A stretch of DNA of 64,000 bases from Basidiobolus meristosporus CBS 931.73 (taxonomy: Eukaryota > Fungi > Basidiobolomycota). The DNA is taken from positions 57,075-121,074 of the forward strand of contig MCFE01000234.1 of NCBI GenBank assembly GCA_002104905.1. The letters run 5' to 3'. Of this stretch, positions 26,500-64,000 are shown in pieces. The notes under the pieces are model-generated. The model saw only the letters and a list, made by a program, of their open reading frames with translations. It was not told the DNA's origin and made no database searches. Every line of letters begins with the position of its first letter. Positions within the stretch are counted from its first letter, which is position 1. Both the position numbers and the translations under genes were made by a program.

Positions 26500-26909
26500 T
26501 ATTGTAAGAGTCTTGTAGGAATTGGAAGTGATTAGGAGCACAAGTAGATTATGTGGTTCTCACTTAATTATTTGTTGAATGCAAAAGTAGTATTTATACT
26601 TTTACATGGTTGTGGCATAACAGATGCATAGAACAAGTTTGGAAAGATCCCAAGAACATGTGCGCAAAGCTTGGGGCTGTTTGGACAGCTTTAGGAATTT
26701 TCTTTTTTTGGATACCAGATATTTTGGTGAAAATATTCCAAGTAGATCCTAACAAGGAGCTTGGTCTGTATTATGTCAAATATGTAGGGAGTGATCCAAG
26801 TGACTAAGTTAGATGGCTTTTTAGGTGGAATTACAAGGTTTTATAACAATATGAACTTTACATGGTCCTGGCAAAACTAACATGATGAATATGTTGAGAA
26901 AGTTCCCAA

Positions 26910-28029
26910 TGTTGCAATATTTTGAGGAGTATTAGAAGCAATGTGGAGAACTAGAGGATTTACATGTTATTCACTTGTAGATTTATTGATCAAAAGTATG
27001 GTATTTATACTTTGGATAAAGTAGAGCAAACAAATGTATATAATTTGTTAACAAAGGTTGCAGCAATATGCGGGCAAAGTTTGGGGGCTTTTGCAGAACT
27101 TTGAGAAAGATCATAATCTGGGTACCTGATAATTTAGTGGAAATATTCCAAGTATATCCCAACAAGAAATTTGGTCAGAATTCTCAAAGATTTGTAGGTA
27201 TTGATCTATTTGACTAAGTTGGGTAAATATTTAGGTGGAATTACAAGTTTTTACAACACCTTCTAGGATTAACCTTTGATTCACTTGGCTTCTTTAGATA
27301 CTTGTTATTTTTGTATCCTAGAGAAAACTGCAATAATACCTGTTAATGGCTTAACTGAGCCAAAGGGACAATCAAGTGCGGAATTTTTACAACAGTAATA
27401 GCAGTAGTGTACACTCCAAGAGTGACAGCTTGGAGCTTTCAACCAGTTGTAAGAGTTTGGAAGACACTTGAAATGACTGGGAGAACAAGTACATTATGTG
27501 AATTTCACTTAATGATTTGTTAAATGGATAAGTGGTATTTATACTGTTACATAGCCCTGGCAAAACAAACACCCACTATATTTGAATTCATGGTCCTGGC
27601 AAAACTAACACATACTATGTTCAAGATATCACTAATAACAGTAGTAGACATTGCAGAGAGTGACAGCCCAGGGCTCATAACCTGTTGCAAGAGTCTTGGA
27701 GATATTGGAAGTGATTGGGAGAAGAAGTTGATAATGTGGTTTTCACTTGATGATTTATTAAATGTACAAGTGATGTGTGTACTTTTACATAGTCTTGGCA
27801 AAACCAACATGTCAAATATGTTTAGAACGATCTCAAGAGCATGTGTGCATAGTTTGGGGCTGTTTAGAAAACTTCAAGAAACTTGATGTTCTGGGTACCG
27901 GATATTTTGGTGAGATATTCCGAGTCACTCTCCACCAGGAATTCGGGTGGAATTCTCCAAGATTTGTAGACTATGATGTTAGTGACCAAGTGAAGTGAGT
28001 ATTTAGGAGTAATCAAGAAATTCACAACA
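26910..28029 (-). repeat. Cluster of additional Copia LTRs (26910-27258, partial ~27445-27600, 27683-28029)
   Basis: Homologous to the LTRs at 21635 and 26500, with TG..CA ends. Two are followed by PBS and gag-start remnants. Confidence 0.75.
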
Positions 28030-30225
28030 GTCTTCACTAATGATTTGTTGAATGTAAAAGCGGTATCCTGATGTTTACATGGTCTGGCCAACATTTTGGT
28101 CCGAGTGATGCACAACAAGGAATTCGGGCCCAGCAGCGTAAAGTTCACAGGCTACGAGCTGAGTGGCTAAGCGATTGGAGTATTTAGGAGCGGTTCCCGG
28201 ATTTACCCCATTTTGGCCAGGCTTGAAAGGATGAACAGACACATCCACCAGTGGGAGGATCCAAATCTCCGACATCAGTCTGCCAAGACCTAGGGTACAC
28301 ATCAGGCGAATCCCAAGGTGCTGAGACTTGTGCAAAATCCCCCCCCCCAAAGATTGCAAGGCCAAATCACCCTGCATAGGGATACCCGTTTGGGCCCTGG
28401 AATAGCCTGAATGTATCACAACCAACCTACCGCTCTGACAGTTTGAGGCACCCGAAAAAAGCATCACATGCAGGTGAGCGCCCCCAAACCAGTGTGCTGG
28501 TGGTTGACAGTTTTGGATGGGAAGGGGGTAACTGTACTTCTACCACAGGGAGAATATGTTTGAGAAGGACCCAAGAAGATGGGTGCCAGGTTTGGGATCA
28601 CTCACACCACTTCGGGCGACACCATATTCTGGACATGTTGGTGAAAAGATTTGAGGGGAGTCCCGGCAAAGAATTCGGACGAAAAGATTCCAGCCGACTG
28701 TTCAGGGACCGGTTCAGTGAGTGTAAATGGAGCAGCACCCAGCAGTACCAAATAGCAGCATGTATGGCCCAACGAATGGGAACTTTTAGAGGGGAGGATG
28801 GAAACTCGTGAAGGGTGATCTTCTTGCCAATTCCAGTGAATTGTGAAAACACCTCCCCCCGAAGGATCGAGATCCACCCATGCAATCGTTGGGGATCAAA
28901 TCGAAATCTAGGACGGATGAGTTGGATTACGAGCCATTACAGGGTGGATCCACCTTATTCGTCGAGTCGATCCACCACTGGGCGAGGTTAACCTCGAAAG
29001 GGATGCCACTATCACCGACCTATTCCAGTACACATCCGAACGATTCCTACCCGCGGCACCATCTCCACATCACCCTACTGAGCCTCGGTGCATCCTCAGC
29101 GGAACGACCAGGGGTGGGTCAGGAGATCCGCTCACCACCGATACCGCCATGCTCACGAACTCCACCTGCTCGAGTTCGAGTCCATGTTCGTATGGACACG
29201 AGGCGTAGGGATGGTTGGGGCGTCGTGATTGGAATTGGATTGAATTGGGGGGGGGGGTTTTTTTTCAAGGAGGGATTTCCATTCCTGTGCTAGGTCTGGC
29301 ACACCATGTGCATCCTCGATCATCAGCATCAGGTCGCCGCTAGGCCACTTCCGGTTACACCATCCACTCACGCCGGTTCTCAGGCCGGTCTTTGCACTTA
29401 TGGGGCGTATGCTCTGCCGCTGAGTAAACTGACAGTGGGCCTCAAAAAAGTTGAGGATTTCGTGAGGAGCTCAATGATACCGCTGGTGAGTAACGGAGCG
29501 AGAGGGTACGTGGCGGATTCATAGGCCACGATGGTACGATCACGTGACTCGCTGGGAACGTTAGTTCCGGACCTGGTTAAGCCTACCACGCCCCCCCTGG
29601 TCGTCCACGGACCAACTCGGCCCCTAACACAATCTAACCTAGGCGGGGTTGGAAACATAGTCGGGGCGGATGGTTCGCGGGGAACCAGGCTCCGCCGTAG
29701 CCTTCCCGGATCCACGGTTTCGTAGCTGGATCGGCGAGTGGGAAGAGAGCCCGTAGCCCACCTTCAAGCCCGAGCTGAGGTGTGGAAGGACGGCTGAGAC
29801 TCAAAAAGTCAACCGGTGAATCCCAGGTCCCTGGGGAGCTTCGGTAACCTGATCCCGGAGGGCCCATGGTGCATCTTATGGTGGCCCAGGGAAACGGAAT
29901 GACGATGTGGTTTCGATGGGGGTTCACATGATAGGTAAAGATTTATTATCCACTGAGAATGAAGGGTGTGGTGGTGAGTTTGGCAAGACGCGGGTCCGCG
30001 AAGGGGCGAAAGAAATAAAGAAAGGGATGGTGATGGAAGTGGAAGTGGAAGTGGAGGTGAAGAGAGTCGATCGGAAGGTAACCCGCGACAAGGCAATATA
30101 TGACAAGAATAAACGTGGTGGGAGGGGAGGGAAGGGGAGGGAAGGGGAGGGGGAAGGGGAGAATCGTGTATTTGGAGCTAACTTTACATGGTAGGGGTGA
30201 GCAAGATGGATGCAATGAGCTGAAT

Positions 30226-31540
30226 TCACGTACTGGTGGCGGGACTTGTAAAGATGGAGCTTAGCAGCCCGTTGACCTTACTGCTGGTGAATTCCGGCAT
30301 GGTGAAGTTGGCATTTAACGCGGCGGCGACCGGGGTTGGCATAGGGTTGGGTGCGGTGGCGCTGTTCTGTCCGGAATTCCCGGATCCCAATCCGTACAAG
30401 TGGCCACTACATCGAGAAAGTTGGGGGTTGGTTTGGGTGGAGGGTGCCGAGGTGGTACATGCCTACTTACAGGAATTTCTCGTCCTCGATGTGGTCGTCG
30501 AAGAAGATCTGTCGCATTTTGAAGAAGGTGTTGCATGTCAGAAGACTATCGCTCCCTGCTTGGTGTTGCGGCCCGATCCTAGGAACCTACGGGGAAGAGA
30601 GGCGGGATTAGACAGGGCTGAGCGAGGGCTTAACGTGAGACCTGGCATTACCTGCAGCTCGTCGGCGATATCTTGTAAGCCACCCTTGAGATTTCGGCAG
30701 CTTTTCATAAGATACTTGATGTCGTAGATGCAGGGGAAGTAGATGCGCAACAGCTCGAAGAAATCATTCTCCTCTGCAGGAAGTCGATTACACGTAAGGA
30801 CCTTCAACAGGTACCCAAAGTCATACCCGCTAGAGGGGAAAAGGGTCAACACCGGGTGAGAACAAGACATGGTCCACAAACACCTACCTATGAAACGAGA
30901 TCCACTTGACCTCGTCCAACAATACAAACCCGGAGCTAGTCAACAACTCACCGAAGTGGTGAACATCGATGCCGAACTCCTCGTGCTTTTTGAAATCAAT
31001 CCCCGACTTGGTCAAAAGATCGATCGAGTCCTGTGCGTACATGTCCTCACTAAAGGAAGAGGGAAGAGTCCTTTGGTTAACCGAAGTGTGTGTGGGGGGG
31101 AAGAAATAGTTTGGTTGGTGCCGCATAACTTACCTTAAGTCGAATTTGAAGTTAAACTGCCAAGTGCAGGTGCCTGGTGGTAGGTTGCCTCTCTCATCTG
31201 CCAACGTGATGCCCAACTGGATCAATTTCAGCAGATCCACATTACACCGCAAGGTTTGAAAATGGTAATCGGCGGAGGTTTTAAAGGTCCCGATTGGTCT
31301 AGCTACAACTCCAGGGAATTCCGTGTCCTAAGGGGGGGGGGGGAATGCGTTAAACCAGACTGTTCTGGTGGAGAGAAGAGAACGCGAGATGCGCCAAGCC
31401 AGGTCGGTATTAAGGAACAAAGTAACACTTACCATGGCGACGTAAGGGTACTTCTCGATAAGGGCTCTGAGATAGACCATCTCTTGGTCCAGATTCTCCG
31501 CCCATACTTCTTTGATGAAACGGCTTTCTTGGGTTAACAT
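30226..31540 (-). CDS. CAF1: CCR4-NOT deadenylase subunit CAF1/POP2 (DEDD RNase), at least 5 introns
   Basis: Spliced translation: [23 protein letters not shown]|[35 protein letters not shown]|[13 protein letters not shown]..|[16 protein letters not shown]..|GHLYGLG. Junctions are GT..AG. Start codon and last exon are slightly uncertain. Confidence 0.93.
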
Positions 31541-31853
31541 TGAGTAGGAAGTTCGACGTGTACTGTACTGTAACGAGATTTTTCCCAAAATCAGTTGGCT
31601 TTTGGAGCCTGGATAGGGTGGTGACGTTCAGGAAACATAGGCCCATCACAGGTTCCCGTATAATTCGTATCATTTCAAATTTTTAAGGAGTGATCATTGG
31701 TCCCTAGGCTAGATTTTTTTACTGTGCTCATTGCTGGCCCTGATAAACATTGGGTAAGGGGAGCTTGGTTTCTAATCCAGTGAAGATTAGGTGAGCAGCT
31801 GGGCGTGATTCCCCCATATCAGGTGACTCTACGACATGATGCGTATGACGGAG

Positions 31854-31868
31854 TAACCCTAACCCTAA
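31854..31868 (+). promoter_or_regulatory. Interstitial TAACCCTAACCCTAA (telo-box-like) in the divergent CAF1/EF-2 intergenic region
   Basis: 2.5 telomeric units, C-rich on the plus strand, ~310 bp upstream of CAF1. Function is inferred only. Confidence 0.4.
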
Positions 31869-34193
31869 GTACGGCCATGCATCTTGCTGTGCCGCTTAGC
31901 ATGTTTCCGATGGTTCGAAAACAGGGCACCGAAACCCACCAACAATCACTTTAGTCAGAATTTACCCGGGACCCCATCACCATCAGCGTTCGGAGGTTTA
32001 TTGATCCGTTGAGTGATTCGAATCAAGCGTCCAGGTGGCGGAACTAGGGATTTTTTCTATTCCGCAGGGTTCATGTTGGACAACAGGCTTGCTTTACCGG
32101 CTCTTTCATGGAAGCAGGTCCCTGCTGGTATGTAGGCCACGCAACAACTCTACCAACTCTTCGTTGAAGCCTTGTCTTGCCGCATCAGGGAGCGGAATCA
32201 CGTGACTCGTCGCAAAGAATCGGGCCTACTTGAGTGAAGAATCGTTGGCTAAATCTTGATCGAAGATGTTCGCGACGAGTGGCCCTTTGTTCCAAAGGGC
32301 GAGAATATCCTCTCACCATCAGCTCATGGATCGCTACACCATTCTCACAAATGCACTAGCTTTGGAGCAAGTATATTCCACGAGGCTGGGTCATTGATTG
32401 GTCCAGAGTGTCTCATTCGGATTGAGCTGGTTGAATCCGATCAGTCTCGTGGATGTTTACACCACGCGCACGAAGTGGACCGAATCCTTGTTCCGCAAGT
32501 CACCGAGCAGCCCCATCCAATGATACCGCAACCAAGGAGGGACCTAGTCCGTTCTAATCGCCCTACAGCAGGGCACATCCAGGTTCTGGAAGCAAGCGGC
32601 CCATGAAAAGATTTGGCGCGAGGCCCAGAGTCATCAGGAAAGCTGCCGAGGTGCAGATCAAGCTTCAGGATATTCCATTATCCAGATCACCATTGAGTGG
32701 ATCTAGCGTAAAGTTGCCGTGAATGGAAAGTGTCTGTCCGTATTTTGGGTGGGTAGGTTGGATATGTAAAAAACCCATTCAAGCAATCGTGAAGATCTCT
32801 CTAGCCGCAGGAATCTGAGATTGGTAAGCAGTTAGCATGCTTGTCTACTGTTCCAGGGACGAGCAGCCAGGGGGCTAGCTGTCCGTGATGCGTGCCCACA
32901 ACCGATCGAACGAAATCCTGCAAGAGTCCGGTTCCCAAGCCGACCACCCCTTCCTCGAAACCTGATGGCGGCATGGCTGAACCTCGAATCTTACCACCGC
33001 GGTTGGATGCTTATCATATGCGTCAATCACCACATCAATCCAGTATGGAAGTTTGATTAGACTGGCGTAGCTGAAGGACAGTATCATTGATTATCCCGGC
33101 CAAAGCCAGCATCGCTCATCTATGGCGCCTCAACAGACACTCTTGCTCATAAACATCAAGTCAACACCAAAAAGCCTGATGCTTGCCAAGCATCCAGACG
33201 GGGCTGCGGGATGGCTCGACAGAGGGTACAGAGGCAGTTGCAGATGCCCATTCGCGTCCACGCCTGCCAACCAAGCAAGGTCTCTAATAAACCATCTAGC
33301 AAACAAAACGGGTCTGCCTTTCGCAATCCTATAAGCCACCTACGCTCTTGGAAATACGTCCCATCTGGATGCCCATCCTGCGTGCACTTGGGACCTTTCT
33401 CTGCGGCAGATATGCATCCGCATACGAAGTTGATGCAACTGCAAGCCGATTCCCAAAAAGATCAATCAGCGATATGGCTTGGGTCGTCTTCCCAAACCGC
33501 GTGGGTAGCACAGAGTCTGACCTGGCAGTGTAGGCAATGGTGCTAGTCTAATCAGCGTCACCTTGCGGGCGGTCACTGGTGCCGCACCCGACCTAGCGAG
33601 TAGGCAGCTGCTGGAATCCACAGCTCTCGAGGCCAACCGACCTAAACAAGCCCATCGTGCTTGCATTTGGTTAGCGCTAGTCTCACCTCCCCAAACTTTG
33701 CCTAACCCCAAAAGATCCTGATGTCTAGGTTCTCTAGATTCCTGAATAGGAACCGAGGGATCTGGGTGGCCATTTTAGGCGCTCGCTGGCTGCAGTGACG
33801 GTAGAGGGAAACGCAGTAACCGCTGGCTAATTGCGAGCATGAATCGGTCGTCTTATTTGGCAGTGGTAACCTAGGTGCCACCAAATACGAACACATCATT
33901 TGGAATTGGGAATACGAGGCAGCGTCGGTTCCGCGGGCTCGAATTTTTTTCAATCGCGGATCCAAGATCATTCGCACGTCTGTGCGACTTGGGTGTTGCA
34001 GGCATTGATGGATCAATTTTTTTTCGCAGCTCAACCCTGCTTTTCACTCCGACAACCCAGAAGAAAAAAAAGTCGGGTGGAGGATGTGGTCGTGAGAGTA
34101 TAAGAGGCTGTCGCCTGCTTCCCGAACTTCACCCGGGCATTGCTGGCTTACATAGTCTCTACCTTCCATTAACCCTTTTAGTGTCCAGTCAAT

Positions 34194-36722
34194 ATGGTTA
34201 ACTTCACTATCGACCAAATCCGTGGCCTTATGGACAAGGTTACGAACATTCGTAACATGTCCGTCATTGCTCACGTCGATCACGGAAAGTCCACCCTTAC
34301 CGATTCCCTTGTCTCCAAGGCCGGTATCATTTCCTCCGCCAGAGCTGGTGAAACTCGTTTCACTGATACTCGTCAGGATGAGCAAGATCGTTGTATTACC
34401 ATCAAGTCCACTGCCATCTCCATGTTCTTTGAGCTCCCCAAGGAGGATATTGGTGATGTCAAGCAGAAGACCGACGGCAACGAGTTCTTGATTAACTTGA
34501 TCGATTCCCCCGGTCACGTCGATTTCTCCTCTGAAGTTACTGCCGCCCTCCGTGTCACTGATGGTGCCTTGGTCGTCGTCGACTGCGTCTCCGGTGTCTC
34601 CGTCCAGACCGAAACCGTGTTGCGTCAAGCTCTTACCGAACGTATCAAGCCTGTTATCATCATCAACAAGGTCGATCGTGCTCTCCTCGAGTTGCAATTG
34701 TCCAAGGAAGATTTGTACACCTCCTTCCTCCGTACCATCGAGTCCGTCAACGTTATCATCTCCACCTACTTCGACCCCATCCTCGGTGATGTCCAAGTTT
34801 ACCCCGAGCGCGGTACCGTTGCCTTCGGTTCCGGTCTTCACGGATGGGGTTTCACCTTGAGACAATTCGCTCACCGTTATGCCAAGAAGTTCGGTGTTGA
34901 CAAGGACAAGATGATGGGCAAGCTCTGGGGTGAGAACTACTTCAACCCTGCCACCCGCAAGTGGACCAACCAATCCACTGACGCCAACGGCAAGCCCCTC
35001 GAGCGTGCTTTCTGCATGTTCGTCTTGGACCCCATCTTCAAGCTCTTCGATTCTATCATGAACTTCAAGAAGGAGCAAACTCTCTCTATGTTGGAGAAGT
35101 TGGATGTTCCCCTCAAGTCCGATGAGAAGGACTTGGAAGGAAAGGCCCTCCTCAAGGTCGTCATGCGCAAGTTCTTGCCCGCTGCCGATGCTTTGTTGGA
35201 GATGATTGTCATCCACTTGCCTTCCCCCGTCACCGCCCAGAAGTACAGAGCCGAGTTCTTGTACGAAGGTCCCCAAGACGACCACTGCGCCGAGGGTATC
35301 CGTAACTGCGATCCTAAGGGTCCTCTTATGTTGTACGTCTCCAAGATGGTTCCTACCTCCGATAAGGGACGTTTCTATGCTTTCGGTCGTGTCTTCTCTG
35401 GTACCGTTCGCTCTGGTCTCAAGGTCCGTATCCAAGGTCCTAACTACGAGCCCGGAAAGAAGGATGACTTGTTCATCAAGAACATCCAACGTACTATTCT
35501 CATGATGGGCCGTTACGTCGAGCCCATTGAGGACTGCCCTGCCGGTAACATCGTTGGTCTTGTCGGTGTCGATCAATTCTTGCTCAAGTCCGGTACCATC
35601 ACCACCGACGAGAACGCCCACAACCTCAAGGTCATGAAGTTCTCCGTCTCCCCTGTCGTGCAAGTTGCCGTCGAGGTCAAGAACGCTAACGATCTTCCCA
35701 AGCTCGTTGAAGGTTTGAAGCGTCTCTCCAAGTCCGATCCTTGCGTCCAATGCTACACCTCCGAATCCGGTGAACACATTGTCGCCGGTGCTGGTGAACT
35801 TCACTTGGAAATTTGCTTGAAGGATCTTGAAGAAGATCACGCTCAAGTCCCCATCAAGACTGGTGACCCAGTCGTTCCCTACAAGGAAACCGTCCAAACC
35901 GAGTCCTCCGTTGTTGCTCTTTCCAAGTCCCCCAACAAGCACAACCGTATCTTCATGAAGGCCTTCCCCATTCAAGAGGAGCTTTCCAACGATATCGATG
36001 AGGGTAAGATCACTCCCCGTGATGATTTCAAGGCTCGTGCCCGTGTCCTCGCCGAGGAATACGAGTGGGATGTCACCGATGCCCGTAAGATCTGGTGCTT
36101 CGGTCCCGACACCAACGGCCCCAATCTTTTGGTCGATGTCACCAAGGGTGTTCAATACCTCAACGAAATCAAGGATTCTTGCGTTGCTGCCTTCCAATGG
36201 GCCACCAAGGAGGGTGTCTGCGCTGAGGAACAAATGCGTGGTTGCCGTTTCAACATCATGGATGTTGTTCTCCACGCTGATGCTATCCATCGTGGTGGAG
36301 GTCAAATCATCCCTACCTGCCGTCGTGCCATCTACGCTTCCGCTTTGGTTGCTGAGCCTGGTCTCTTCGAGCCTGTCTACCTCGTTGAAATCCAATGCCC
36401 TGAGAACGCCATGGGTGGTATCTACGGTGTGTTGAACAGACGTCGTGGCCACGTCATCTCTGAGGAACAACGCCCCGGTACTCCTCTCTACAACGTCAAG
36501 GCCTACTTGCCTGTCAGTGAGTCTTTCGGCTTCACTGCCGATCTTCGTTCCAACACCGGTGGTCAAGCCTTCCCTCAATGCGTCTTCGATCACTGGCAAT
36601 TGATGAACGGATCTCCTATCGAGGCCGGCTCCAAGGTTGCCGAAATCGTCAAGAACATCCGTAAGAGAAAGGGTCTTGCTGAGGAAATTCCTCCTCTTGA
36701 CCGTTTCTTGGACAAATTATAA
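34194..36722 (+). CDS. EFT2: Translation elongation factor 2 (842 aa, no intron in CDS)
   Basis: Motifs [20 protein letters not shown], and the diphthamide loop [15 protein letters not shown]. Strong codon bias. Confidence 0.99.
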
Positions 36723-39160
36723 ACTACTAACTGGTATATGTAAAATGTATTGAAGAAGTTCACTTGAATATGCTTTGATTATAGTCAATCCATGATCACT
36801 CAAACTTTTTCGTTTGTACTTAGCATTCATCCCTACAATTAAATAAACTCATTAGAACATTCATTTGGTAGTAAACGATGCTTGCCATTCCCACCTCTTC
36901 TTGCTATTGCCGGGTTGCCACCGCACATTCCGGAATCAACCAGTCTGGCGGGTCCGGATGGTAAACATGGGCCGGCGAATGGTTCGCCCGATATAAATAA
37001 CCTGCTTGAAGGAGCCAAATCCATTTGCATGAGAAGCATGTGGCCCGTCACCCAAGCAGGCGATGCCAATGCAGATAGCCGGATGAGTCATGGGGAATTC
37101 AAGTTGGTGCGCATTCTACTTGCTTTCTCTCCATCCATCCCATCATCCCATGGTACTTATCACCGGTTGGTGCGCGGGATCGGGTGGAAAGGTTAATCAT
37201 GTCCTGACATGCAGTTGGTTCCCCATGGAGGAGTTGGTTTGTTGTGGTCATCGAAGATGCTACCAGCATTACATCGATGACATGCTGTCGTTCTCCTGGG
37301 ATGTCTGCTATTCGGCTGACCTTTTTGTTGGCATATACTTTGAGGGCTCCTGGTGGGAAAACAACCCAACCATATTGGCGGATACTTCGATGTTAAGTCC
37401 CCAAGCGCCGCATTTCTTTTGTTCAAGATTGCCAAAGACCACCATGCATTCCATGACATCATACATAGATGGAGTGTGTTTCAAAGTCCAGGCACGCTTC
37501 GATATGCAATGCCAGATGGACGGGCCTATGGTATTGCTCAGATGGGTTAGGGTGAATCGTTGGCTATTCACTGGATTTACTGGTGCATCAGGGAAGATCC
37601 TCGCCAAACATCAAGAATGCCAACCTATTCGTGCTTCGGGCCACCGCGGTGTGGTCGAAGGAAGGCTGGAAGTAGAGAATCCAATCTAACTTATGTGGCC
37701 TTCATTGGCGGCAAGACTCAATGGGGCTGCCCTTGGTTCCACACGGCAAGCAAGCGCCAAGCAACATTGTCTACGACCTAGGCAGTGGGGCCAAAAGTGA
37801 TGGCACGCTGTCACATGTCGCATCAAGCTTACGGGCTGTGGGATGAAGGGTGAAGGGTAAAGGGTGGCAATGTAGCGTGTTCTAGGAAAAATCAAGTATC
37901 CGTGATTGTAGAAATGGGAAAAGGAAATTGATTTGCTCACCTTAATGATACCTATAGGGGAGATTAGAAGGGGCAAGGGAGAGTCCGACATCAATGAACC
38001 ATTCAACCATCTGATACCAAAGACAAATGGAATATAATCACCATTGAGAAGGGCAAGGGCGCGAAACCAAATCCCAATCTCGATGGTGCTACAATGGTGC
38101 AGGAACTGGATCCAAATGCCAGGCAGTACATAGATGGATATTGCCTATCTAACGCAGTGATTAGACTAGCAATCCTCGTCTCCACCGCCCAATTTGGCAG
38201 TGGATTGTACTGAGTAACACAAGAGCAATATAGGAGATGGATTCCATTGATCACGATGAAATCCACTTTCTTGGCATCGGTGACAGGCCGTCACGTGAGC
38301 CTCCCAAGCCTTGGCCGACATTGGTGTACGAATGAGTGTCTTACCGCCAAAGCCAACATCAGACACTCATCAACAATGCCCGTAGGCTTGCAGGTGGCGT
38401 GAAGCATGAATTGAAACGGCCAGTCAGCCGTAGACAATCGCAGACCACTGGAGTGCTCAGCTGATGTGCTCGCTACGAAGGTGCCGCCATAATCTGATCC
38501 TTTGGAAGTGAAGGTGAGTGGCTATCACAGCAATGATGGGTTGGAGGTGTCCAATCAGGCCTACTGGCTGTTCTTGACCTCATTGGGCTTGGTTTCAGAA
38601 ATATAGGCCTGTTGCTGGAATTGTTCTCGGATTGTCATAGGTTTCAGTAAGCATAACAAACAAAACCGGCCCCACCCAATCCCCATCGCCATCACATTGT
38701 ACTCTGTTCACTGCGTTGTTGCCGAATGGTAGCTTTGGAGTTTCAGTAGTTAGCTATATTAACTCAAGGCTCCTGTGCTAATTATGATGAGGATCGCGGC
38801 CGGCCAATCAGGGTGGGGTCCAATATGTTGAGCCTAGGGGGCTGGAAACCAGATCCCAAAATTAATTTGCTGGGCTCGCCTTGATGGGTATTTAATGTAC
38901 TCCATCGTCTACGAGACTCCATAACCCTGTGCGACGAATTCCATTTAGCTTAAAGCCAAGCCGCACTGCTGATTTCTGGTCGACATCCCGTCAGTCCTTT
39001 AGAAGTAAGACCAGGCCTTCCTCCTTTCCTTGTCCGATATTCCCTTGCCAACCGGGTTTATTCCTCGTAGACATCACCTCCCGCTGAGCCCTCGATCCTT
39101 GCATCGCGCGTGCTTTAACCAACGGTTCTCGACGTACACATTGCATCCCACATATCGACT

Positions 39161-40392
39161 ATGGACGATAAGTATGTTGGCCTGTGCTTGGCTGCTTCCT
39201 CAAGCCTGCTCATTGGCGTCAGCTTCATTCTGACGAAAAAGGGCTTGATCGATTCCTCCTCCCGACAGGGTAAGTCTTCAGAGGTTCACCCACGCGGGCG
39301 TTTACTCATCCCTCCCCCAGGAACTGCTAGTGGCGATACCTATTCATACCTGACTAACTATACGTGGTGGGCAGGGATGGTTACAAGTAAGTGGCGTACA
39401 CACCAAGCTTGATCACAGGCTAACCCCGTTGTGCAGTGGTTTTGGGAGAAATTGCCAATTTCGCTGCATATTCATTTGCGCCAGCCATTCTGGTAACACC
39501 ATTGGGTGCGTTGAGTGTCTTGATCAGGTATGCCGAGCAGTCGCTTCGTGACTGGCCGTATGACTAACAGCTGCCTCTCTGCAGTTCTATCTTGGCATCG
39601 TGGTTTCTGGACGAAAAGCTGGGCTCCGCGGGTAAAGCGGGGTGTGCGCTGTGCATAATTGGCTCCGTTGTGATAGTGTTGCACTCGCCTGAAGATAAAG
39701 AGATCATCTCTGTGGATCAGATCCTTAGCCTTGCAATCCAACCAGGTACTGACGTAATTGACCCTCCACACAACGCCGCATACACTAACATTGTGCCCTC
39801 CCCAGCCTTCGTGACCTACTGCCTCCTGGTCCTACTCACTACATCGTACTTGATCTACCGCGTTGTCCCGAAGTACGGCAAAAAAAACCCGCTAGTCTAC
39901 ATCACTGTCTGCTCTCTGGTAGGGTCGGTAAGCGTGATGGCAGTTAAAGGCTTTGGGACCGCGCTTAAGTTGACCTTTGCGGGATCCAACCAACTGACAC
40001 ATCCTTCAACATACATTTTCGCGGTGGTGGTGGGAGCAGCCATCCTGACTCAGATGAATTACTTCAACAAGGCGTTGGATCTGTTCTCCACCAACATCGT
40101 GACCCCCATTTACTATGTGTTCTTTACCACCGCCACCATCGTCGCCTCCGGTCTTTTGTTCCAAGGCTTCAACGAGTCCAACCCGGTTAATCTAGTATCC
40201 CTCTTCTGCGGCTTCTTCACCATCTTTGTAGGGGTATTTCTACTCAACTCCAATTCCCAGGACAAGTCTCCCAATGTGATAGACAAGTTGCCCAGATACG
40301 ACACCATTGACAAGGCAAAGTTCTCCCTACTGAGAGTGGTCGATTCCTCCAGCCTCGGCCTGCACGGACTGGATAGCGACGACTCTGATTGA
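39161..40392 (+). CDS. NIPA-family magnesium transporter, 4 introns
   Basis: Introns at 39270-39320, 39387-39436, 39528-39584 and 39746-39805 give [70 protein letters not shown]. Confidence 0.93.
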
Positions 40393-40859
40393 TGTCCTCA
40401 GCCGCGCAGCCCTGCTCATGTAACATACAACGAACTTGATACATACACACTAAAAGGCGGACAGCCATCCAGGGTACCTATTCCATTCTCAGCTAGAACT
40501 CGCGGAGGCGCTATGGAACGTCGTGTCCCGTCCGAAAATTTCCCACCCACTCCCCAGTTTGTAAGCCCTGTACGGGATCCCCTCGTATTCCATGCAACCC
40601 ATTTTGCCATAAACGTCGCGCAAGCATAAGGAGAATCGACAATATATACCAGGACTGTTGTATAATGGAATGTTGGTGTCCACGTTTATATTAAAATAAA
40701 TTTCTATGCAGCAAGCTTGGAGATGTCTTTCTCGTGAGATTCCCTGCCCGAGAACGAAGCAGTGATTTCTACATGTATATGGGGGATTGTGAAATATCAA
40801 TGGAAACTGCTACCAAAGGTGGCGAGGGAATCTAAGCGATGGAGGGCAAGCTTTTCAGA

Positions 40860-55043: not shown

Positions 55044-55643
55044 ATGGTATATCAAATCAGAATCGTCAAAGATGAAGAAGGGATTAACCAAATCCAAAGA
55101 CTCCTTTACACGGTCTACATTGAGGAGGGCAAATGGAAGTTCAACCCTGCCAATCCAGCTGGGCTAAGGATTGAGAACCATAGGCTAACTGACAACCGCG
55201 ATGATATCGCGACATACTTCGGTGCGTTCAGCAACAAGAAACTAATAGGCTGTTGCCGAATCTGTCCAAGACATGAAGGTTTATTTGAGATACAGAATTA
55301 CAACAGCAAGACTTTGAGCCTACTAACTGAAAAGAACTTGGTGGAGGGTTCAAGGAGTGCAGTACTACCCGAGTATAGACAGCATGGAGTATTTCATATT
55401 ATGTTTCACGAAGTTCTCCAATACTGTTATCAACGCGATCTTTTACTATTTGTTTGTACTAGTTCAAATGAACTTCAGCGTATTTTTCGAATCATTGACT
55501 TTCCAATGGTTGAGGATTTCACATTCAGATATGAATCCCATGACCCAAAAGAGTGTCAACTTTTTGTGGCTAAGTCCCGATCAGACTTACTGAATAGTAT
55601 TTCAAAACTTCGCCCGACAGTTCCATTACAAAGTCATCTTTAA
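55044..55643 (+). CDS. GNAT-fold N-acyltransferase, LuxI/FeeM-like (199 aa, intronless)
   Basis: Motifs RLLYTVYIEEGKW, TDNRDD, GCCRICP, VEGSRSAVLPEYRQHG. TATATATA at ~54923 upstream and AATAAA downstream. Confidence 0.7.
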   Translation: MVYQIRIVKDEEGINQIQRLLYTVYIEEGKWKFNPANPAGLRIENHRLTDNRDDIATYFGAFSNKKLIGCCRICPRHEGLFEIQNYNSKTLSLLTEKNLVEGSRSAVLPEYRQHGVFHIMFHEVLQYCYQRDLLLFVCTSSNELQRIFRIIDFPMVEDFTFRYESHDPKECQLFVAKSRSDLLNSISKLRPTVPLQSHL

Positions 55644-58370: not shown

Positions 58371-58769
58371 GTTAGGGTTGGGTTAGGGGAGGGAAAAGTC
58401 ACCAAGTTGGTGAAATCTTTATTTGAGTTAAGAACTAATCCAAGTACAAATAAAGAAGCCAATTAAGAGGTCTAGAACCTCTCTAATAAGTAATCTAATC
58501 TATGTTTTGTTTCATCTCTAATGTTTGTTTCAATAAAGTAAAGCTCATCAGGGGTAAATATAAAATTCAGGGGTTTTGGGGGAAGTACAAATTGCAGATG
58601 TTTCTGATCAATATAATCCAAGACTGGAACCCAGCCTGGGATTAGGTGTAGTAGGAAAGGTGTGTGGACTTGTAAGTAGCTCTGCCACATAGATCTTAGA
58701 TGGCCCTGAGCCAGTAGTCTTGGTTTCTCAGCTTTTTGAAGTTTTGAAGCAAGCTCTGTTACTACAGCA
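58371..58769 (-). mobile_element. Telomeric LINE family B, ~400-bp 3' fragment
   Basis: The open frame AEKPRLLAQGHLRSMWQSYLQVHTPF..LPPKPLN aligns with family A SEKPKLAYLKYLTDLWQQYLQQHTPF..LPPFPLN. Same 3' hairpin. Confidence 0.8.
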
Positions 58770-58840
58770 CTTAGGGTTAGGGGGGGAGACAGTCACCAAC
58801 AGGTGAAATCTTTATTTCAGTTGAAACAAAGAAGCCAGCG

Positions 58841-61609
58841 CTACTGTTGTAGCTTTGATACAAGAGTGTGTAGCTGAGGGGAATTTGTAGGTAAGTTAAT
58901 AAGAAGTGATGATAGTTCTTCAGTGCTCAAGACACTGTTCAGTGGGAAGGGGGGTAGCAAGAGAGGTAAGAATGACTTGTGAACAACATTAATGAGGGGA
59001 ATGTGATAAGGATTGATATTCATCATAAAGGGAGTGTGCTGCTGCAGATATTGCTGCCAAAGGTCTGTCAAGTACTTCAGGTAGGCCAGCTTGGGTTTTT
59101 CTGACTGCAGAATATAGTGAGCAAACTTCTTGACTTCAGGATCTCCAAGTATAGTTCTCCAGCAGGAGCCAGGTGTTGTGTGGTGTGTTCTCTTCCAGTC
59201 CTTAATCAGTGGGTTGTTACAGTTGTGAAGTCTGAGGTATAATCTGGTTCTAAGGTAGAGAAGTCTGATCTTATAGGGCATAAACCCAAAAGCACCAAGA
59301 ATAGCATGTCTGTAGGGGCATTCAGGCAAATGAGGCACCAAGGAGGTAATGCACCATACTGCAAACTTGTCAAGCTTAGTGCAGTCTCTAGAAGTAAGAG
59401 AGAGAAGTGGTAAGCCAAATTCCAGGACAGGGAAGACAAACTGCTTGAGTAGAAGGAGGCAGCTGGGAGCTGAAGTTGTAGGAGGAGTAACAGCCAGTAG
59501 CTTGTGGAGTGCCTGTCTTGCCAGGATAATTCTCTTCTTCAGGTGTGCTCCAGAGTCTAGTCCAGTAGGAAGGAAAGGAAAGCCAAGATATGTAGCAGAA
59601 ACCTGAGCAGGTAGAGTGGAGTTCTCCAAGTTGATGGGAAAGCCCAAAGGTACTGTCTTTGCAATGGAAAGCTGGAGATTATTCTTCTGCAGATACTGGT
59701 GGATGGTCTGGGAGTCTTGTTGCACATTGGAGGAGGATATTCTGATGTCATCAGCAAAGAGAGTAACCAGGCAGTCAGCTGAGAGTCTTGGGAAATCATT
59801 CAGGAAGATGGCAAACAGTATAGGACCAAGCACAGAGCCTTGAACCACTCCATTAGGAACTGAGAACACAGCTGATTGCTCACTTGGGTGCAGAATTCTT
59901 GCTTGTGGATCCAGAAACAGAGACCTGACAAGGAGGGTGAGAGAGGTACTGGAGAAGCATTGCAACTTGGACCAAAGCAGATTTCTGTCAACTGAATCAA
60001 AGGCCTTAGTAATATCAAACAGAACAGAGGGATACTTGCACTGGAGAGAGTGATCTTGGCTAAGTATGACTGCATATTCCAAGGAGAGGCCAGGAACAAA
60101 GCCAAACTGTGCAGGATGAAAATGAAGGGAGTCAGAGTAGAGCTCCTGAGCAAGCAGAAGCTCAAACACCTTTCTGCAGGTGGGCAGCAGAGATATTGGC
60201 CTGTAGGAGCTAGGATCCAGGTGCTTTCCTTTACCCTTGTACAGTGGCAGAACATTTGCAAAGGACCATTCCTCAGGAGTAGAAAGCTGGGCTGAGCATT
60301 GCTGAAACAGTGGAAGCAGAAGTGCAGACATGGCCTTGGTACTAGTCTTCAGAAGCTCATAGGAGATTGTGTCCACACCTGGAGCAGTAGAGTTGGGAAG
60401 CCTCTTGAGCACATTATGGATTCTCCTTTGATCAAGTGCAAGTGGGATGGGCAGAGTCTTGAAGTCAGGATGAAAGCCAGGAGTTGAGTACTGCTTTGTA
60501 GAGAAGAAGATGTTAGCCAGCTGTTCTGTTGAAGGTAACTTCCTGGAAGAGGGCCTCATTGCCCTGTAGAGTCTTGATACTGTTCTTGTTATAGAGTTGG
60601 AAGATTGCAGAGGCAAGGAACTCATAATATGATCCCGGAGCTGAGTATGCAGAGTGTGGTGAATTGCCTTGGAGTGGTGTATTGCTGTCAGGAGGAGTTT
60701 CTCTGTTTTTGGGTTAGGGAAGCTCAGGTAGCTTTGTTGCAGGGCTGAAACAATGGATTCCCATTTTCTTGAGGTAACAGCAGTAGTCTTGCATGGCAGT
60801 GAGAGGGAGGCAGACACCAGAATCAGATGCTTCACAAAGAGCCAGGCAAAGTTGAGATCATCTGGCAGAGAAAGTAGCAAACTGGCAAGCTTCAAGTAGT
60901 TCCCAAAGTCTTTCTTCTGATTCTTGGTAGCTTTGTGGGTGAGCACAGTAAGTTTTGGCAGCTTCTTCTTCACAACTGGTTGCATAGAAAGGGACCAGGC
61001 TGGGTGGTCAGAGGCTCTCAAGGATCCTAGCTCAGCTCCAGAGAATTGCTTAACTTCATTCACAAAGTAGAGGGCAGCAGCAGAAGGGCAGATCCAGTCA
61101 ACACATCTTTTCTCAGATTGAGCACCTAGTGCTAGCAGGTGGCTTTCTCTCAGGAAGTTCAGTAGGAATGTAGACCTTGGCTTCATTCTTGCAGTCAGAG
61201 TAGTCTTGTTCTCAGGATGGGGAATGTTGAGATCTCCAAGCAAGATAACAGGTGTTGATATAGATTGTTGGTATTGCTGAACCTTCTGGCATATAACTTG
61301 CACTTCCTGAAGGGCTAGACTTGGAGGCAGATAGCAGAGCACCAGACTGATAGTTGGCAACTGGAGAGCAGCACAGTAAGGGGAGTAAAGAGGAACACAG
61401 AGCTGAGGAGTATTGATGGTAGAAGAGATGAAGCAGATAGAGGAGGTATTCTTTGTTCTAGGAGTAGAAAAGCAATATAGATTAGTCAAAAGTATAGAGG
61501 GTAGCTGGACATCAATCAAACACAGGAGGGAAAATCTTGAAAGAAGTCTCTCTAGAGTTGGTCTTGATGGCTGTATGCTGTTGCAGTTAAGCAACAGAAC
61601 TTCAGGTAG
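58841..61609 (-). CDS. ORF2: APE endonuclease plus reverse transcriptase, no AUG start
   Basis: APE motifs LLLNCNS, CYLPP, LGDLN, VDWI, SDH. RT motifs APGVD, YRPISLL, QFGF, FDITKAFDSV, GVVQGSVLGP, LFADD, YLG. No RNase H or C-terminal CCHC recognised. Confidence 0.95.
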   Translation of the reverse strand, partial: LPEVLLLNCNSIQPSRPTLERLLSRFSLLCLIDVQLPSILLTNLYCFSTPRTKNTSSICFISSTINTPQLCVPLYSPYCAALQLPTISLVLCYLPPSLALQEVQVICQKVQQYQQSISTPVILLGDLNIPHPENKTTLTARMKPRSTFLLNFLRESHLLALGAQSEKRCVDWICPSAAALYFVNEVKQFSGAELGSLRASDHPAWSLSMQPVVKKKLPKLTVLTHKATKNQKKDFGNYLKLASLLLSLPDDLNFAWLFVKHLILVSASLSLPCKTTAVTSRKWESIVSALQQSYLSFPNPKTEKLLLTAIHHSKAIHHTLHTQLRDHIMSSLPLQSSNSITRTVSRLYRAMRPSSRKLPSTEQLANIFFSTKQYSTPGFHPDFKTLPIPLALDQRRIHNVLKRLPNSTAPGVDTISYELLKTSTKAMSALLLPLFQQCSAQLSTPEEWSFANVLPLYKGKGKHLDPSSYRPISLLPTCRKVFELLLAQELYSDSLHFHPAQFGFVPGLSLEYAVILSQDHSLQCKYPSVLFDITKAFDSVDRNLLWSKLQCFSSTSLTLLVRSLFLDPQARILHPSEQSAVFSVPNGVVQGSVLGPILFAIFLNDFPRLSADCLVTLFADDIRISSSNVQQDSQTIHQYLQKNNLQLSIAKTVPLGFPINLENSTLPAQVSATYLGFPFLPTGLDSGAHLKKRIILARQALHKLLAVTPPTTSAPSCLLLLKQFVFPVLEFGLPLLSLTSRDCTKLDKFAVWCITSLVPHLPECPYRHAILGAFGFMPYKIRLLYLRTRLYLRLHNCNNPLIKDWKRTHHTTPGSCWRTILGDPEVKKFAHYILQSEKPKLAYLKYLTDLWQQYLQQHTPFMMNINPYHIPLINVVHKSFLPLLLPPFPLNSVLSTEELSSLLINLPTNSPQLHTLVSKLQQ

Positions 61610-63145
61610 TCAGGCAGAGGTTGTAGCTTCTTCAGAGGCAGCATTAACAATGTGACCTGCAGAGTCCCAGAGCTCTTCAAATGGTGCATCACTTAAGTCA
61701 GCAAGGAGGGAAATGGCATGGTTCTTGAGGAAGTATGCCACATCATAGGAGGGGGCTTGTCTCTTGATGGCAGCAAAGAAAGACAGAATGGCAACATGGG
61801 CTGGAGGCTTGTTGAACAGTAGAGAGTCAGAGGATTCTGATTCTTCAGGCACTATCTTGAAGTCAGTTTTCAGCCAGTTAAGGTTCTTCTCCACAAAGGC
61901 AACAAATGGGTCAGCAATGTTTTGGTCTAGGATAACCTCCAGAATCTTCCCTTTTCTCCAGGCCAGGTTGACAATTCTTGAGAGCTGAATATTGCATGCC
62001 TTGAGTGCTTTCCTGATGTTGGAAATGGGGGTCCAGGGAACTTGCTTCAAGTACACCACAGTCCAGGTAGAAGCTGGTGGTAGGTTTGCTGGGGGCTTGT
62101 AAGTCCTTCTGTGTTGCAATGGAGCTGCAGTAGTCAGATTGGAGTCCACATTCTCAGTAGAAGGTTTTCTTGATGTGTCTTGCTGAATAGTACTGGAGCT
62201 GGATGTGCTGATAATTCTTGCTAGAACCTTGCCTGCATAAGTCTGAGGTATAGCTGAGGTGACTGTAGAGGTGGTGGCAGCTGGTGCAGGTGGAGAGGCA
62301 GAGACTGAAGCAGGAACTGAGGTCACCTGGGAGAAGGCAGTAGAAGCAGGTTTTCTGGGAGGAACAGAGTTCACTATCCAGTTGTTCTGTAAAACACTGG
62401 AGTAGCTTTTCTGTGGAACAGGATCTTGCTCTTGAACAGGAACAGAAGCAGGAGGCTGGGGCTGAGCAGTAGTGGTAAGGCAGTGGCACTCCAAGGAAGC
62501 TTTTTGCAAGGCATCTCTGGCAGTTTTCAGGGCAGTATTGGCTTCATTCTTGAGCTTCTTGCATTGGGCATCCAGTCTCTTGTTTTCAATAGCCAGGGCA
62601 GTATTGGCAGCCTCTAAATCAGCAATTCTCTTCTCAATTGCAAGGAATCTCTGAAGAAATGCATCAGTAGAAGTGCTGGCATCTGGGAGAGCAGTGGCAG
62701 GAATAGAGTCCATTGACAGTGGGCTTCTTGGAGGCAAGGAAAGTGGACTGGCAGATTCAGGCACAAAAGGAGATATCCTGGCAGGAGGAGAAGGAGTATC
62801 CAAGGCAGTAACAGAGGCAATTCTTGTTGGTGAAGCAGCAGCAGGGGAGGCAAGCCTGTTCAAAAACTGGGCAGGAGAGAGTGCTTGAGGAGAGGGAGTC
62901 TTCAGCTTGCCAAGCATGTCTTCCATCAGAGTGATACCAATATTCCTGGTGCATTTGCAGAGAAAAGTAAGCTTCCTGAGTCTGCCAGCTCTTCCATTCC
63001 TTCTGATAGTTCCTTTGTTTCCACAGTTGGGGCAAGAAATCTTCTTGACAGACTTGTCAAAGCAATCAAGAACCTTCCTTTCAGGTGTAGTGGGCTCCTG
63101 TTGAGGTTTTGGTGGCATATCCAGAGTTTCAGCTTCAAATTTCAT
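61610..63145 (-). CDS. ORF1 (511 aa from first ATG): zinc ribbon, Pro/Ser-rich linker, coiled coil, C-terminal RRM-like domain
   Basis: Segments CPNCGNKGTIRRNG..FLCKC; FLAIEKRIADLEAANTALAIENKRL (heptads); VVYLKQVPWTPISNIRKALKACNIQLSRIVNL. Confidence 0.85.
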   Translation of the reverse strand: MKFEAETLDMPPKPQQEPTTPERKVLDCFDKSVKKISCPNCGNKGTIRRNGRAGRLRKLTFLCKCTRNIGITLMEDMLGKLKTPSPQALSPAQFLNRLASPAAASPTRIASVTALDTPSPPARISPFVPESASPLSLPPRSPLSMDSIPATALPDASTSTDAFLQRFLAIEKRIADLEAANTALAIENKRLDAQCKKLKNEANTALKTARDALQKASLECHCLTTTAQPQPPASVPVQEQDPVPQKSYSSVLQNNWIVNSVPPRKPASTAFSQVTSVPASVSASPPAPAATTSTVTSAIPQTYAGKVLARIISTSSSSTIQQDTSRKPSTENVDSNLTTAAPLQHRRTYKPPANLPPASTWTVVYLKQVPWTPISNIRKALKACNIQLSRIVNLAWRKGKILEVILDQNIADPFVAFVEKNLNWLKTDFKIVPEESESSDSLLFNKPPAHVAILSFFAAIKRQAPSYDVAYFLKNHAISLLADLSDAPFEELWDSAGHIVNAASEEATTSA

Positions 63146-63362
63146 TTTTGAGATTTTTGGGTGATTTTTGATGGGCGGGATCAAAATTAGGGTTAGGGTT
63201 GCGCGCTGTGACTGCTTTTTACGATCGCAAGGTCAGATCCTAGGAAAAAATAAAAATAGTTAGTAAAGGTGATTTAATGGATGGATGGATGGATTCGGAG
63301 TCAGATTCAATCAAAAAATCAAATCGTTGACTAATTTAAAGAGGGTTAGGGTTAGGGTTAGG

Positions 63363-63883
63363 GGGGAGGAAAGTCACCAAGTGGTGAAATCTTTATTTAC
63401 TTATGACAAGTATCTAAAGAAGCCAAGTTAATCTGAAGTTATTCCTAGAAAGCTAGGTCTGAGAGATATCTTCCTGGTAAGCCAGGTCTGAGAGTTGAGA
63501 AGCTGAGTGGTAATATATTTCCTAGTTAGCTAGGTCTGAGAGTGGTTTCCTGGAAAGCCAGGCCTGAGAAGTGAGAATCTGAATATATCTGAGCTAAGTT
63601 ATACTGGTTTGCGGTAGCTGAATTGTGGCCGGAATGGCCAGTAGACTGGGGGAACTGAGGTGTATTTCTGGGCGATCACTGGCCAAATTTACTAGGCAAA
63701 TCTGGCCAAGTAGCATTTCAAGGATTTCAGCCAATCAGAGCCTTTACTTTGCCCGATGGTTGATCAAGCCATCTCCCAATGAGCACACATCAATTTATTA
63801 ATCAAATTTTGCTGGATCCAGGATTTGAACCCACAACCATGGGTATGGAAGGGTTAGGGATAACCACAAGGCTAAGTGTTCTT
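63363..63883 (-). mobile_element. tRNA-Gly(TCC)-derived SINE sharing the LINE 3' end
   Basis: A-box-like TAGCCTTGTGG (63874-63864), CT-TCC-A loop (anticodon 63849-63847), B box GGTTCAAATCC (63831-63821) at tRNA spacing. The ~70-nt tail is homologous to the family B 3' UTR. No ORF. Confidence 0.8.
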
Positions 63884-64000
63884 GGTTAGGGTTAGGGTTA
63901 GGGTTAGGGTTAGGGTTAGGGTTAGGGTTAGGGTTAGGGTTAGGGTTAGGTTAGGGTTAGGGTTAGGGTTAGGGTTAGGGTTAGGTTAGGGTTAGGGTTA
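63884..64000 (+). repeat. Telomeric repeat (TTAGGG)n, chromosome end
   Basis: About 19 units, G-rich strand running to the end of the window, with two TTAGG variants. Confidence 0.97.

Follow-up and report, generated by a model that had tools for sequence, protein, structure and literature searches.

A short noncoding element between a telomere and a telomeric LINE

The stretch of DNA analyzed here (64,000 nucleotides [nt], referred to below as the window) forms the right-hand end of contig MCFE01000234.1 (121,074 nt) in assembly GCA_002104905.1 of Basidiobolus meristosporus, and it closes with a terminal telomere array, (TTAGGG)n, on the plus strand at 63884 to 64000 that reaches the end of both window and contig (Tandem Repeats Finder and exact-repeat search; period 6, 19.8 copies, 96% matches). 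Directly inside this array we found an element that resembles a short interspersed nuclear element (SINE). This SINE-like element lies on the minus strand at 63364 to 63883, with its 5' end (63883) distal and its 3' end proximal, is 518 to 520 nt long and noncoding, and is made up of a head of about 75 nt, a body of about 360 nt, and a tail of about 65 to 80 nt with the 3' module of long interspersed nuclear elements (LINEs). It is flanked by the terminal (TTAGGG)n on one side and, on the other, by a (CCCTAA)3 spacer that precedes a full-length LINE with apurinic/apyrimidinic endonuclease (APE) and reverse transcriptase (RT) domains. The spacer as a whole, (CCCTAA)3CCC, occupies 63343 to 63363 (minus strand) between the tail of the element and the 5' end of the LINE, with (CCCTAA)3 proper at 63363 to 63346. 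Read from the chromosome end inwards, the order is telomere, SINE-like element, (CCCTAA)3, full-length LINE, (CCCTAA)2, a truncated family B LINE, degenerate telomere units, and a truncated family A LINE followed by more elements, and the sense strand of all elements in this array is the C-rich strand. We propose that the SINE-like unit is quite probably the terminal copy of a nonautonomous retroelement of about 520 nt that is put on chromosome ends by the RT of telomere-specific LINEs. That the element is nonautonomous, LINE mobilized, and telomere targeted we hold with high confidence; with rather less assurance, its head is likely to be a working RNA polymerase III (Pol III) promoter of tRNA ancestry.

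The longest open reading frame (ORF) in the element encodes 58 amino acids (aa), exact-product look-ups of two small ORFs inside it returned nothing on record, and its length falls within the range of SINEs (under about 700 bp). By tblastx and nucleotide comparison, its body has no similarity to any LINE. Four hairpin units, CTCAGRCCTRGCTNNCYAGG, are found at 63444 to 63568 (minus strand) within an internal duplication of about 77 nt; their stems are alternately CCTAG/CTAGG and CCTGG/CCAGG, which differ by a compensatory A:T to G:C change, and a search of the rest of the window and of 11 related loci revealed no further units. The predicted RNA of the whole element folds no better than shuffled sequences. 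On the plus strand, the body holds a perfect match to a CCAAT/NF-Y-type motif, AGCCAATCAG, at 63729 to 63738, within a 44-nt stretch (63711 to 63754) that is variant free in all four sequencing runs described below, and this motif is a possible RNA polymerase II (Pol II) promoter element. A metagenome scan for further copies with a 21-mer from an invariant stretch of the body gave a single chance match, on the bacterial contig L007.

The telomeric LINEs and their common 3' module

The full-length LINE belongs to family A and, as delimited by its ORFs, Pfam matches, and a 5' untranslated region (UTR) match, spans 58783 to 63342 on the minus strand. It consists of a 5' UTR (63342 to 63147), ORF1 (approximately 63146 to 61610), ORF2 with the APE and RT domains (61594 to 58841; Pfam RVT_1, 1.6e-25; Exo_endo_phos_2, 3.8e-4), and a 3' tail (58840 to 58783). 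The segment from 63342 to 63199 (144 nt) was considered as a separate fragment and rejected as such, as it is part of the LINE 5' UTR and matches the 5' ends of two related LINEs, L009 and L002; the matching stretch, 63187 to 63342, corresponds to L009:1-190 and L002:1-60. The 5' UTR of this copy also has an extra GCGCGCAACCCTAACCCTAA (approximately 63187 to 63206) that is absent in L009. Further inwards, a 5'-truncated family B LINE (58386 to 58770, minus strand) retains the C terminus of ORF2 and a 3' UTR, and its tail is the nearest to that of the SINE-like element. Its ORF2 C terminus has 60% aa identity to the ORF2 ends of L001 and L008 (tblastx), and judged by its sequence, family B is a genuine second LINE lineage.

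Relatives of the LINE on contigs of other samples (L001 to L011; 48 to 80% ORF2 identity) carry the same 3' module, followed by CCCTAA. Five of them with 58 to 80% ORF2 identity, namely, L001 (ERR14127404), L002 (ERR14042393), L003 (ERR14042384), L009 (ERR14127551), and L010 (ERZ23872178), end in AAATAAAGATTTCACC..GGTGAC..C-run and CCCTAA and are then followed by further short tailed fragments, which indicates that the telomeric array habit is common across the LINE lineage. Outside this lineage, relatives of the LINE are at most 32% identical (over at least two-thirds of the query), the nearest solved RT is that of human L1 ORF2p (E = 1.5e-12), and the Atlas clusters that the LINE matched are generic APE+RT clusters only.

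The tail of the SINE-like element (63364 to 63431, minus strand), defined by BLAST and alignments, is LINE derived and comprises a GGCTTCTTT block, an AATAAA (63397 to 63392), the hairpin TCACC-ACTT-GGTGA (63386 to 63373), and a pyrimidine and C run. Poly(A) is absent from the element. This tail matches the 3' end of the family B LINE (58386 to 58466) over 82 nt at 78% (blastn), whereas only its last 36 nt match the 3' ends of all family A LINEs in the window, at 86 to 89% (best, 89%), and an earlier note on this stretch was right to place the tail closer to family B than to family A. According to the alignments, the conserved module consists of GGCTTCTTT, a variable spacer, AAATAAAGATT(T/A)CACC, a loop of 4 to 5 nt, GGTG(A/G), a pyrimidine and C run, and TAACCC. 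In short form (GGCTTCTTT, AAATAAAGATTTCACC-loop-GGTGAC, C run), this module is common to the element and all telomeric LINE copies in the window, and the element has its 3' tail in common with a partner LINE of the same genome. The stem of the module is invariant in the alignments, which therefore offer no covariation evidence either way.

A 48-nt fragment in the nontelomeric interior of the window (27261 to 27308, plus strand) is 87.5% identical to the tail-proximal part of the SINE-like element (63403 to 63450) and lacks the terminal hairpin. It sits in a tandem duplication of about 440 nt (approximately 26560 to 27300) beside a copia-type gag ORF (25620 to 26495).

Copies, junctions, and constraint

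Contigs of four public runs (X1, X5, X7, and X9) were placed against positions 62500 to 63890; X1 comes from the same species and probably from the same sample as the assembly. X1 contributed 3071 contig pieces, 1787 of which are at least 99% alike. Its summed word depth, which is not copy number, amounts to 0.5 to 0.88 million over 63346 to 63862 compared with 0.08 to 0.25 million over the 5' part of the LINE and is flat across the element and 3- to 7-fold lower in the LINE. Since divergent single contigs have depths of 48 to 174, the scale is one of many hundreds to thousands of copy equivalents, several-fold above full-length LINEs.

The best-supported head joints in X1 connect 63887/63890 with 63342-63362 across one to three TTAGGG units; that is, the head of the element is followed distally by the tail of another element, either of family A or of the SINE/B type. 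At least six 5'-truncation points were found in the same run (63399, 63465, 63534, 63564, 63619, and 63780), each leading over telomere units to a new tail, and the loose ends at the tail flank (63361/63362) start with a telomere unit and then continue into diverse sequence. Copies with one fixed 3' end and varying 5' ends, joined to telomere units at every junction and always in the same orientation, are expected from target-primed reverse transcription off the G strand and not from the spread of a block by recombination. The element therefore appears in X1 as a multicopy unit with the hallmarks of reverse transcription, and telomere repeats stand on both sides of it in one orientation, in the window copy as well as in the X1 joints and loose ends. 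A single copy, or copies lacking telomeric junctions, either of which the earlier note had named as speaking against its proposal, is not what the data contain, as the element is multicopy in X1 and every junction seen is telomeric.

Common variants among the X1 copies (at least 10% share) fall at about 15 positions in the body (63440 to 63812) and at none in the head (63813 to 63883) or the tail (63363 to 63439). A contig of X5, which derives from a different organism (organism B), spans 63611 to 63861 and shows 13 differences over 202 nt of body and 0 over 49 nt of head (63813 to 63861, B box included). Body segments in X9 and X7 are 92 to 98% identical, and overall the copies of related organisms are about 90% identical, with the covered part of the head unchanged. 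Each of these tests of constraint is of only modest significance, but they point the same way, namely, that both head and tail matter for propagation. One X5 contig (record 9; 63434 to 63631) begins with CTTCCGATCT, an Illumina adapter end, and its boundary at 63434 is thus a library artifact and not the end of an RNA or of the element.

The head and its resemblance to a tRNA gene

The head (63809 to 63883, minus strand; about 75 nt) has a layout like that of a Pol III type 2 promoter. On the minus strand, the sequence from the telomere into the head is (CCCTAA)n-CC|AAGAACACTTAGCCTTGTGGTTATCCCTAACCC...GGTTCAAATCC..., and the junction reads ...CCCTAACC|AAGAACACTTAGCC..., which puts G 63881, the base proposed as position 1 of a tRNA, at a distance of two bases from the telomere, just as the earlier note had described it. 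An A-box-like sequence, TAGCCTTGTGG (63864 to 63874, minus strand), starts 8 nt from G 63881 and differs from TRGCNNAGTGG by one mismatch, T for A14. The B box, GGTTCAAATCC (63821 to 63831, minus strand), is exact to GGTTCRANTCC and is the only one in the window. Start to start, the two boxes are 43 nt apart, which, with G 63881 as position 1, is the canonical distance in a tRNA that lacks position 17 and has a variable loop of 5 nt, and this agrees with the exact tRNA spacing that had been claimed before. Shuffling predicts 0.69 exact B sites for the window, and one is present; sites that match the A box with no more than one mismatch have a frequency of 3.1e-4 per position. A pair of such an A box with a B box is found only once in 128 kb (both strands of the window); from the B-site count and the A-site rate, a pair within ±2 nt of the canonical spacing is expected about 1e-3 times per window. 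The pair is located at the 5' end of the element, whose limits are known independently from its junctions. At the level of sequence, the element thus has a putative internal Pol III promoter with A and B boxes, tRNA-like spacing, and a position near the 5' end.

The head does not form the cloverleaf of a functional tRNA gene. Its anticodon stem is unpaired (1/5), as had been noted earlier, and of the other stems under canonical numbering (acceptor, 2/7; D, 2/4; T, 4/5), only the T arm pairs. The putative anticodon loop, CTTCCAT (U33, TCC = Gly, A37), is not significant by itself. At the would-be D and anticodon arms, the head contains CCCTAACCC, which is 1.5 telomere units (63851 to 63859, minus strand; repeat family D14), and the mid-head sequence TATCCCTAACCCTTCCATACCC resembles degenerate telomere repeats of this family as much as D and anticodon arms. 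Nor does the head resemble the 5' UTR of the family A LINE or those of L001, L002, L006, and L009.

Several observations weigh against our reading of the unit as a LINE-mobilized element with a tRNA-derived Pol III promoter. A tRNAscan- or Infernal-type check of the head, which the earlier note had recommended, came out negative: ARAGORN called no tRNA either across the window or in the head, which was tried at five thresholds from default to its laxest setting (-ps40, 40%), and Rfam cmscan at an E value of ≤10, applied to 2 kb and to 101 nt, found no tRNA, 5S, 7SL, or snRNA family, while nothing in the whole window passed the Rfam gathering score. The cloverleaf has 9/21 pairs in total versus 7.9 expected at random, the fold of the head has a z of −0.10 against shuffles, and A14, which is normally invariant, is T in the A-box-like sequence. 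The significance of the variant-free head is only modest (about 0.04 to 0.07), with contig ends lowering the power, and X1, probably being from the same sample, is not independent of the assembly. The AATAAA in the tail and the perfectly conserved CCAAT-type motif in the body (63729 to 63738) would both suit Pol II, and perhaps a Pol II promoter at this motif acts on the neighboring element, as in HeT-A. Only X5 came up as a possible RNA run; its kind is unspecified and its depth is 3 to 5, and it provides no RNA support. It is true, as the earlier note had stated, that TTTT is missing from the sense strand in the 518 nt scanned (dinucleotide-shuffle P = 0.0175), but the sense strand of the LINE also has TTTT-free runs of 509 to 1349 nt, and with this control we rejected the absence of TTTT as strong evidence. 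The first T run downstream of the element, a T6 at 63313 to 63318 (minus strand), could serve this copy as a Pol III terminator; it does lie beyond (CCCTAA)3, at the position given before, but the "fragment" that was thought to hold it is the LINE 5' UTR.

What had been proposed, a tRNA-derived SINE that parasitizes a telomeric LINE, stands in part. The element is short, noncoding, and multicopy, has a LINE-derived tail, is telomeric in a fixed orientation, and outnumbers the 5' region of the LINE, all of which mark it as a SINE-like parasite of that LINE. The head displays no homology to tRNA in sequence or structure by the searches described, and with these negative searches and pairing at the random level, it is the boxes, their exact spacing, and their position at the 5' end that suggest a tRNA ancestry, which we infer and do not regard as a demonstrated homology.

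Model of propagation and alternative explanations

Our results lead us to propose the following cycle. Pol III, with TFIIIC on the B box, would initiate at the telomere/head junction, either at the head itself or shortly upstream of it. As the element has no T4, the transcript would pass through the tail hairpin and the CCCUAA repeats to the first proximal T run, which here is the T6 in the LINE 5' UTR. The ORF2p of the LINE would then bind in trans to the 3' module, which is present in both elements. A TTAGGG 3' OH, either at the natural end of the G strand or at an APE nick, might pair with CCCUAA and prime reverse transcription, by which the G strand would be extended by the antisense of the element; the orientation and the spacers of one to three repeats that we observed correspond to this outcome. 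Incomplete copying gives rise to 5'-truncated copies, such as those present in X1. Finally, telomerase or the next element adds to the new end, as the terminal TTAGGG array of at least 117 nt and the spacers of one to three units show.

A nonautonomous, telomeric, and LINE-mobilized element could also depend on Pol II for its transcription, like HeT-A or MoTeR2, with its promoter either in the distal neighbor or in its own CCAAT-containing body, and the boxes would then be a chance match or a dead relic. Several features would fit such an element, namely, the AATAAA in the tail, the NF-Y-type AGCCAATCAG in a 44-nt stretch without a variant in any run, the lack of a tRNA signal by covariance model or ARAGORN, and the head-to-tail arrays, in which an upstream element could drive the next one. 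We nevertheless consider Pol II transcription rather unlikely, as chance would yield an A plus B pair that has precise tRNA spacing and an A box at +8 from an independently determined 5' end only about 1e-3 times per window, the head does not vary among the copies or in organism B, the element is without poly(A), and upstream of the terminal copy there are only telomere repeats and hence no neighbor promoter. It is far less probable still that the unit belongs to a LINE, either as the long 3' UTR left by 5' truncation of a member of an unseen family or as an internally deleted copy (SIDE/MoTeR2 type) whose head would be the 5' UTR of that LINE. The tail is indeed nearest to family B, a lineage without a 5' end among the compared sequences, and 5' truncation is common in this array, but the best-supported X1 joints all set the same 5' end (63883 to 63890) against telomere repeats, the depth is flat over the unit with a 3- to 7-fold drop in the LINE, tblastx revealed no coding remnant, and the head differs from all five LINE 5' UTRs with which it was compared (the family A LINE, L009, L002, L001, and L006). 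The presence of a LINE 3' recognition module in the element, its constant 3' end with varying 5'-truncation points that are each capped by telomere units and a new tail, the diverse sequences that flank the tails, and a strict single orientation that fits priming from the G strand likewise make it highly improbable that we are dealing with a subtelomeric repeat similar to the X or Y' elements of yeast that was spread by recombination or break-induced replication, even though such a repeat would share the location at chromosome ends and the high similarity of the copies, most pieces of which are at least 99% alike.

Going beyond LINE-mediated addition of a Pol III-transcribed element, one might speculate that the SINE-like element, rather than the LINE, is the main builder of Basidiobolus chromosome ends and is coadapted with telomerase, a notion that we find quite improbable. 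In that case, a very high-copy Pol III RNA with a read-through CCCUAA 3' end would prime on the G strand, and the 5' CC of the head together with the internal CCCUAACCC would leave a cDNA 3' end that could be seized by telomerase or by the next element. If this were true, SINE addition and telomerase would together form a mixed telomere maintenance system.

Relation to known systems

Eel UnaSINE1 with UnaL2 and the tobacco TS SINE are reportedly among the tRNA-derived SINEs with a "stringent" LINE partner. It is a general principle that SINEs can carry the 3' ends of their LINE partners (PMC4176376, PMC3747384). Like the stringent tRNA-class SINEs, the Basidiobolus element is short and noncoding, has a head with A and B boxes, an unrelated body, and a partner-LINE 3' tail with a small stem-loop and short terminal repeats, is more common than the LINE, and occurs in 5'-truncated copies. 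In contrast to them, it is not interspersed, as every junction seen is telomeric and in one orientation, target-site duplications are absent (as would be expected at a chromosome end), the telomere unit CCCTAA serves as the 3' terminal repeat in place of a poly(A) or simple-repeat tail belonging to the element, and its head is without detectable tRNA homology beyond the boxes.

Telomere-specific LINEs have been described from several lineages, such as TRAS1 and SART1 of Bombyx, Zepp of Chlorella, GilM and GilT of Giardia, Tx1-1_ACar of Anolis, MoTeR1 of Pyricularia, and FoTeR of Fusarium (PMC10088271, PMC12857005). The Basidiobolus element resembles these in its fixed-orientation insertion into or onto telomeric repeats and in arrays that are split by short telomere tracts, but unlike these autonomous, RT-encoding elements, it encodes nothing. 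In the case of TRAS1, the sense strand is on the C-rich strand. No Pol III-type SINE partner of these LINEs is described in the reviews and papers that we searched.

Dependence on the RT of another element is also known from chromosome ends. MoTeR2 of Magnaporthe is a derivative of MoTeR1, and HeT-A of Drosophila needs the help of other elements. These are TART and TAHRE (PMC5537684). The Basidiobolus element shares with HeT-A and MoTeR2 the need for the RT of another element, the head-to-tail arrays at chromosome ends, and the numerical excess over its autonomous partner. In contrast to both, it encodes nothing and has a Pol III promoter-like head; HeT-A is a 6-kb, Gag-encoding element transcribed by Pol II from the 3' end of its neighbor, and MoTeR2 has both termini of MoTeR1, while the Basidiobolus element has only the 3' 65 to 80 nt or so of the LINE. 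Coprina is a terminal Penelope-like element of fungi. Athena of bdelloid rotifers is a terminal element of the same kind (PMC10088271). As in Athena and Coprina, the sense of the Basidiobolus element is on the C-rich strand, its 3' end is followed by short reverse-complement telomere repeats, and copies are stacked at chromosome ends, but Athena and Coprina are Penelope-like RT elements that lack an endonuclease, whereas here a noncoding, SINE-like unit has an APE+RT LINE as its partner.

In the literature searched (an overview of telomeric retrotransposons, PMC10088271; a review on how retrotransposons insert at chromosome ends, PMC4700185; the FoTeR paper, PMC12857005; papers on SINEs, PMC4494074, PMC3747384, and PMC6007223; and full-text searches), we found no telomere-specific SINE and no description of Basidiobolus telomeric elements, and in keeping with the earlier note, no telomere-specific LINE/SINE pair in fungi surfaced. 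SINE/LINE partnerships and telomere-specific LINEs are both well known; as far as our knowledge and the literature searched extend, a SINE that inherits the telomere specificity of its partner is not. If the element is indeed driven by Pol III, the target specificity of a LINE would be passable by way of an RNA 3' module and telomere-repeat priming, without cis-preference, and a compact RNA of about 0.5 kb would be at hand for dissecting template recognition by a telomeric LINE. It would also add a very abundant, possibly Pol III-driven component to the chromosome ends of an early-diverging fungus noted for its unusual genome architecture. These findings bear on an old comparison, that of telomerase and its RNA with the RT of a LINE and the RNA of a SINE (PMC4700185).

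Other features of the window

The last annotated gene before the retroelement array is an intronless gene for a FeeM/GNAT-like N-acyl amino acid synthase (55044 to 55643, plus strand; Pfam FeeM, 1.1e-10), and a search for further copies by way of this neighboring gene returned only the contig of the window itself. An interstitial AACCCTAACCCTAAG at 31855 to 31869 was inspected and found to be unrelated to the SINE-like element. A GC-rich block (approximately 28000 to 40400; 50% versus 39% GC) contains an intronless eEF2 gene (34194 to 36722), to which an 851-aa ORF without a Pfam match lies antisense. The eEF2 gene shares 95% identity with the annotated eEF2 that Basidiobolus meristosporus CBS 931.73 has on a different contig and is thus a paralogue in that genome. 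A fragment of a NIPA Mg transporter is found at 39592 to 40392 within the same block.

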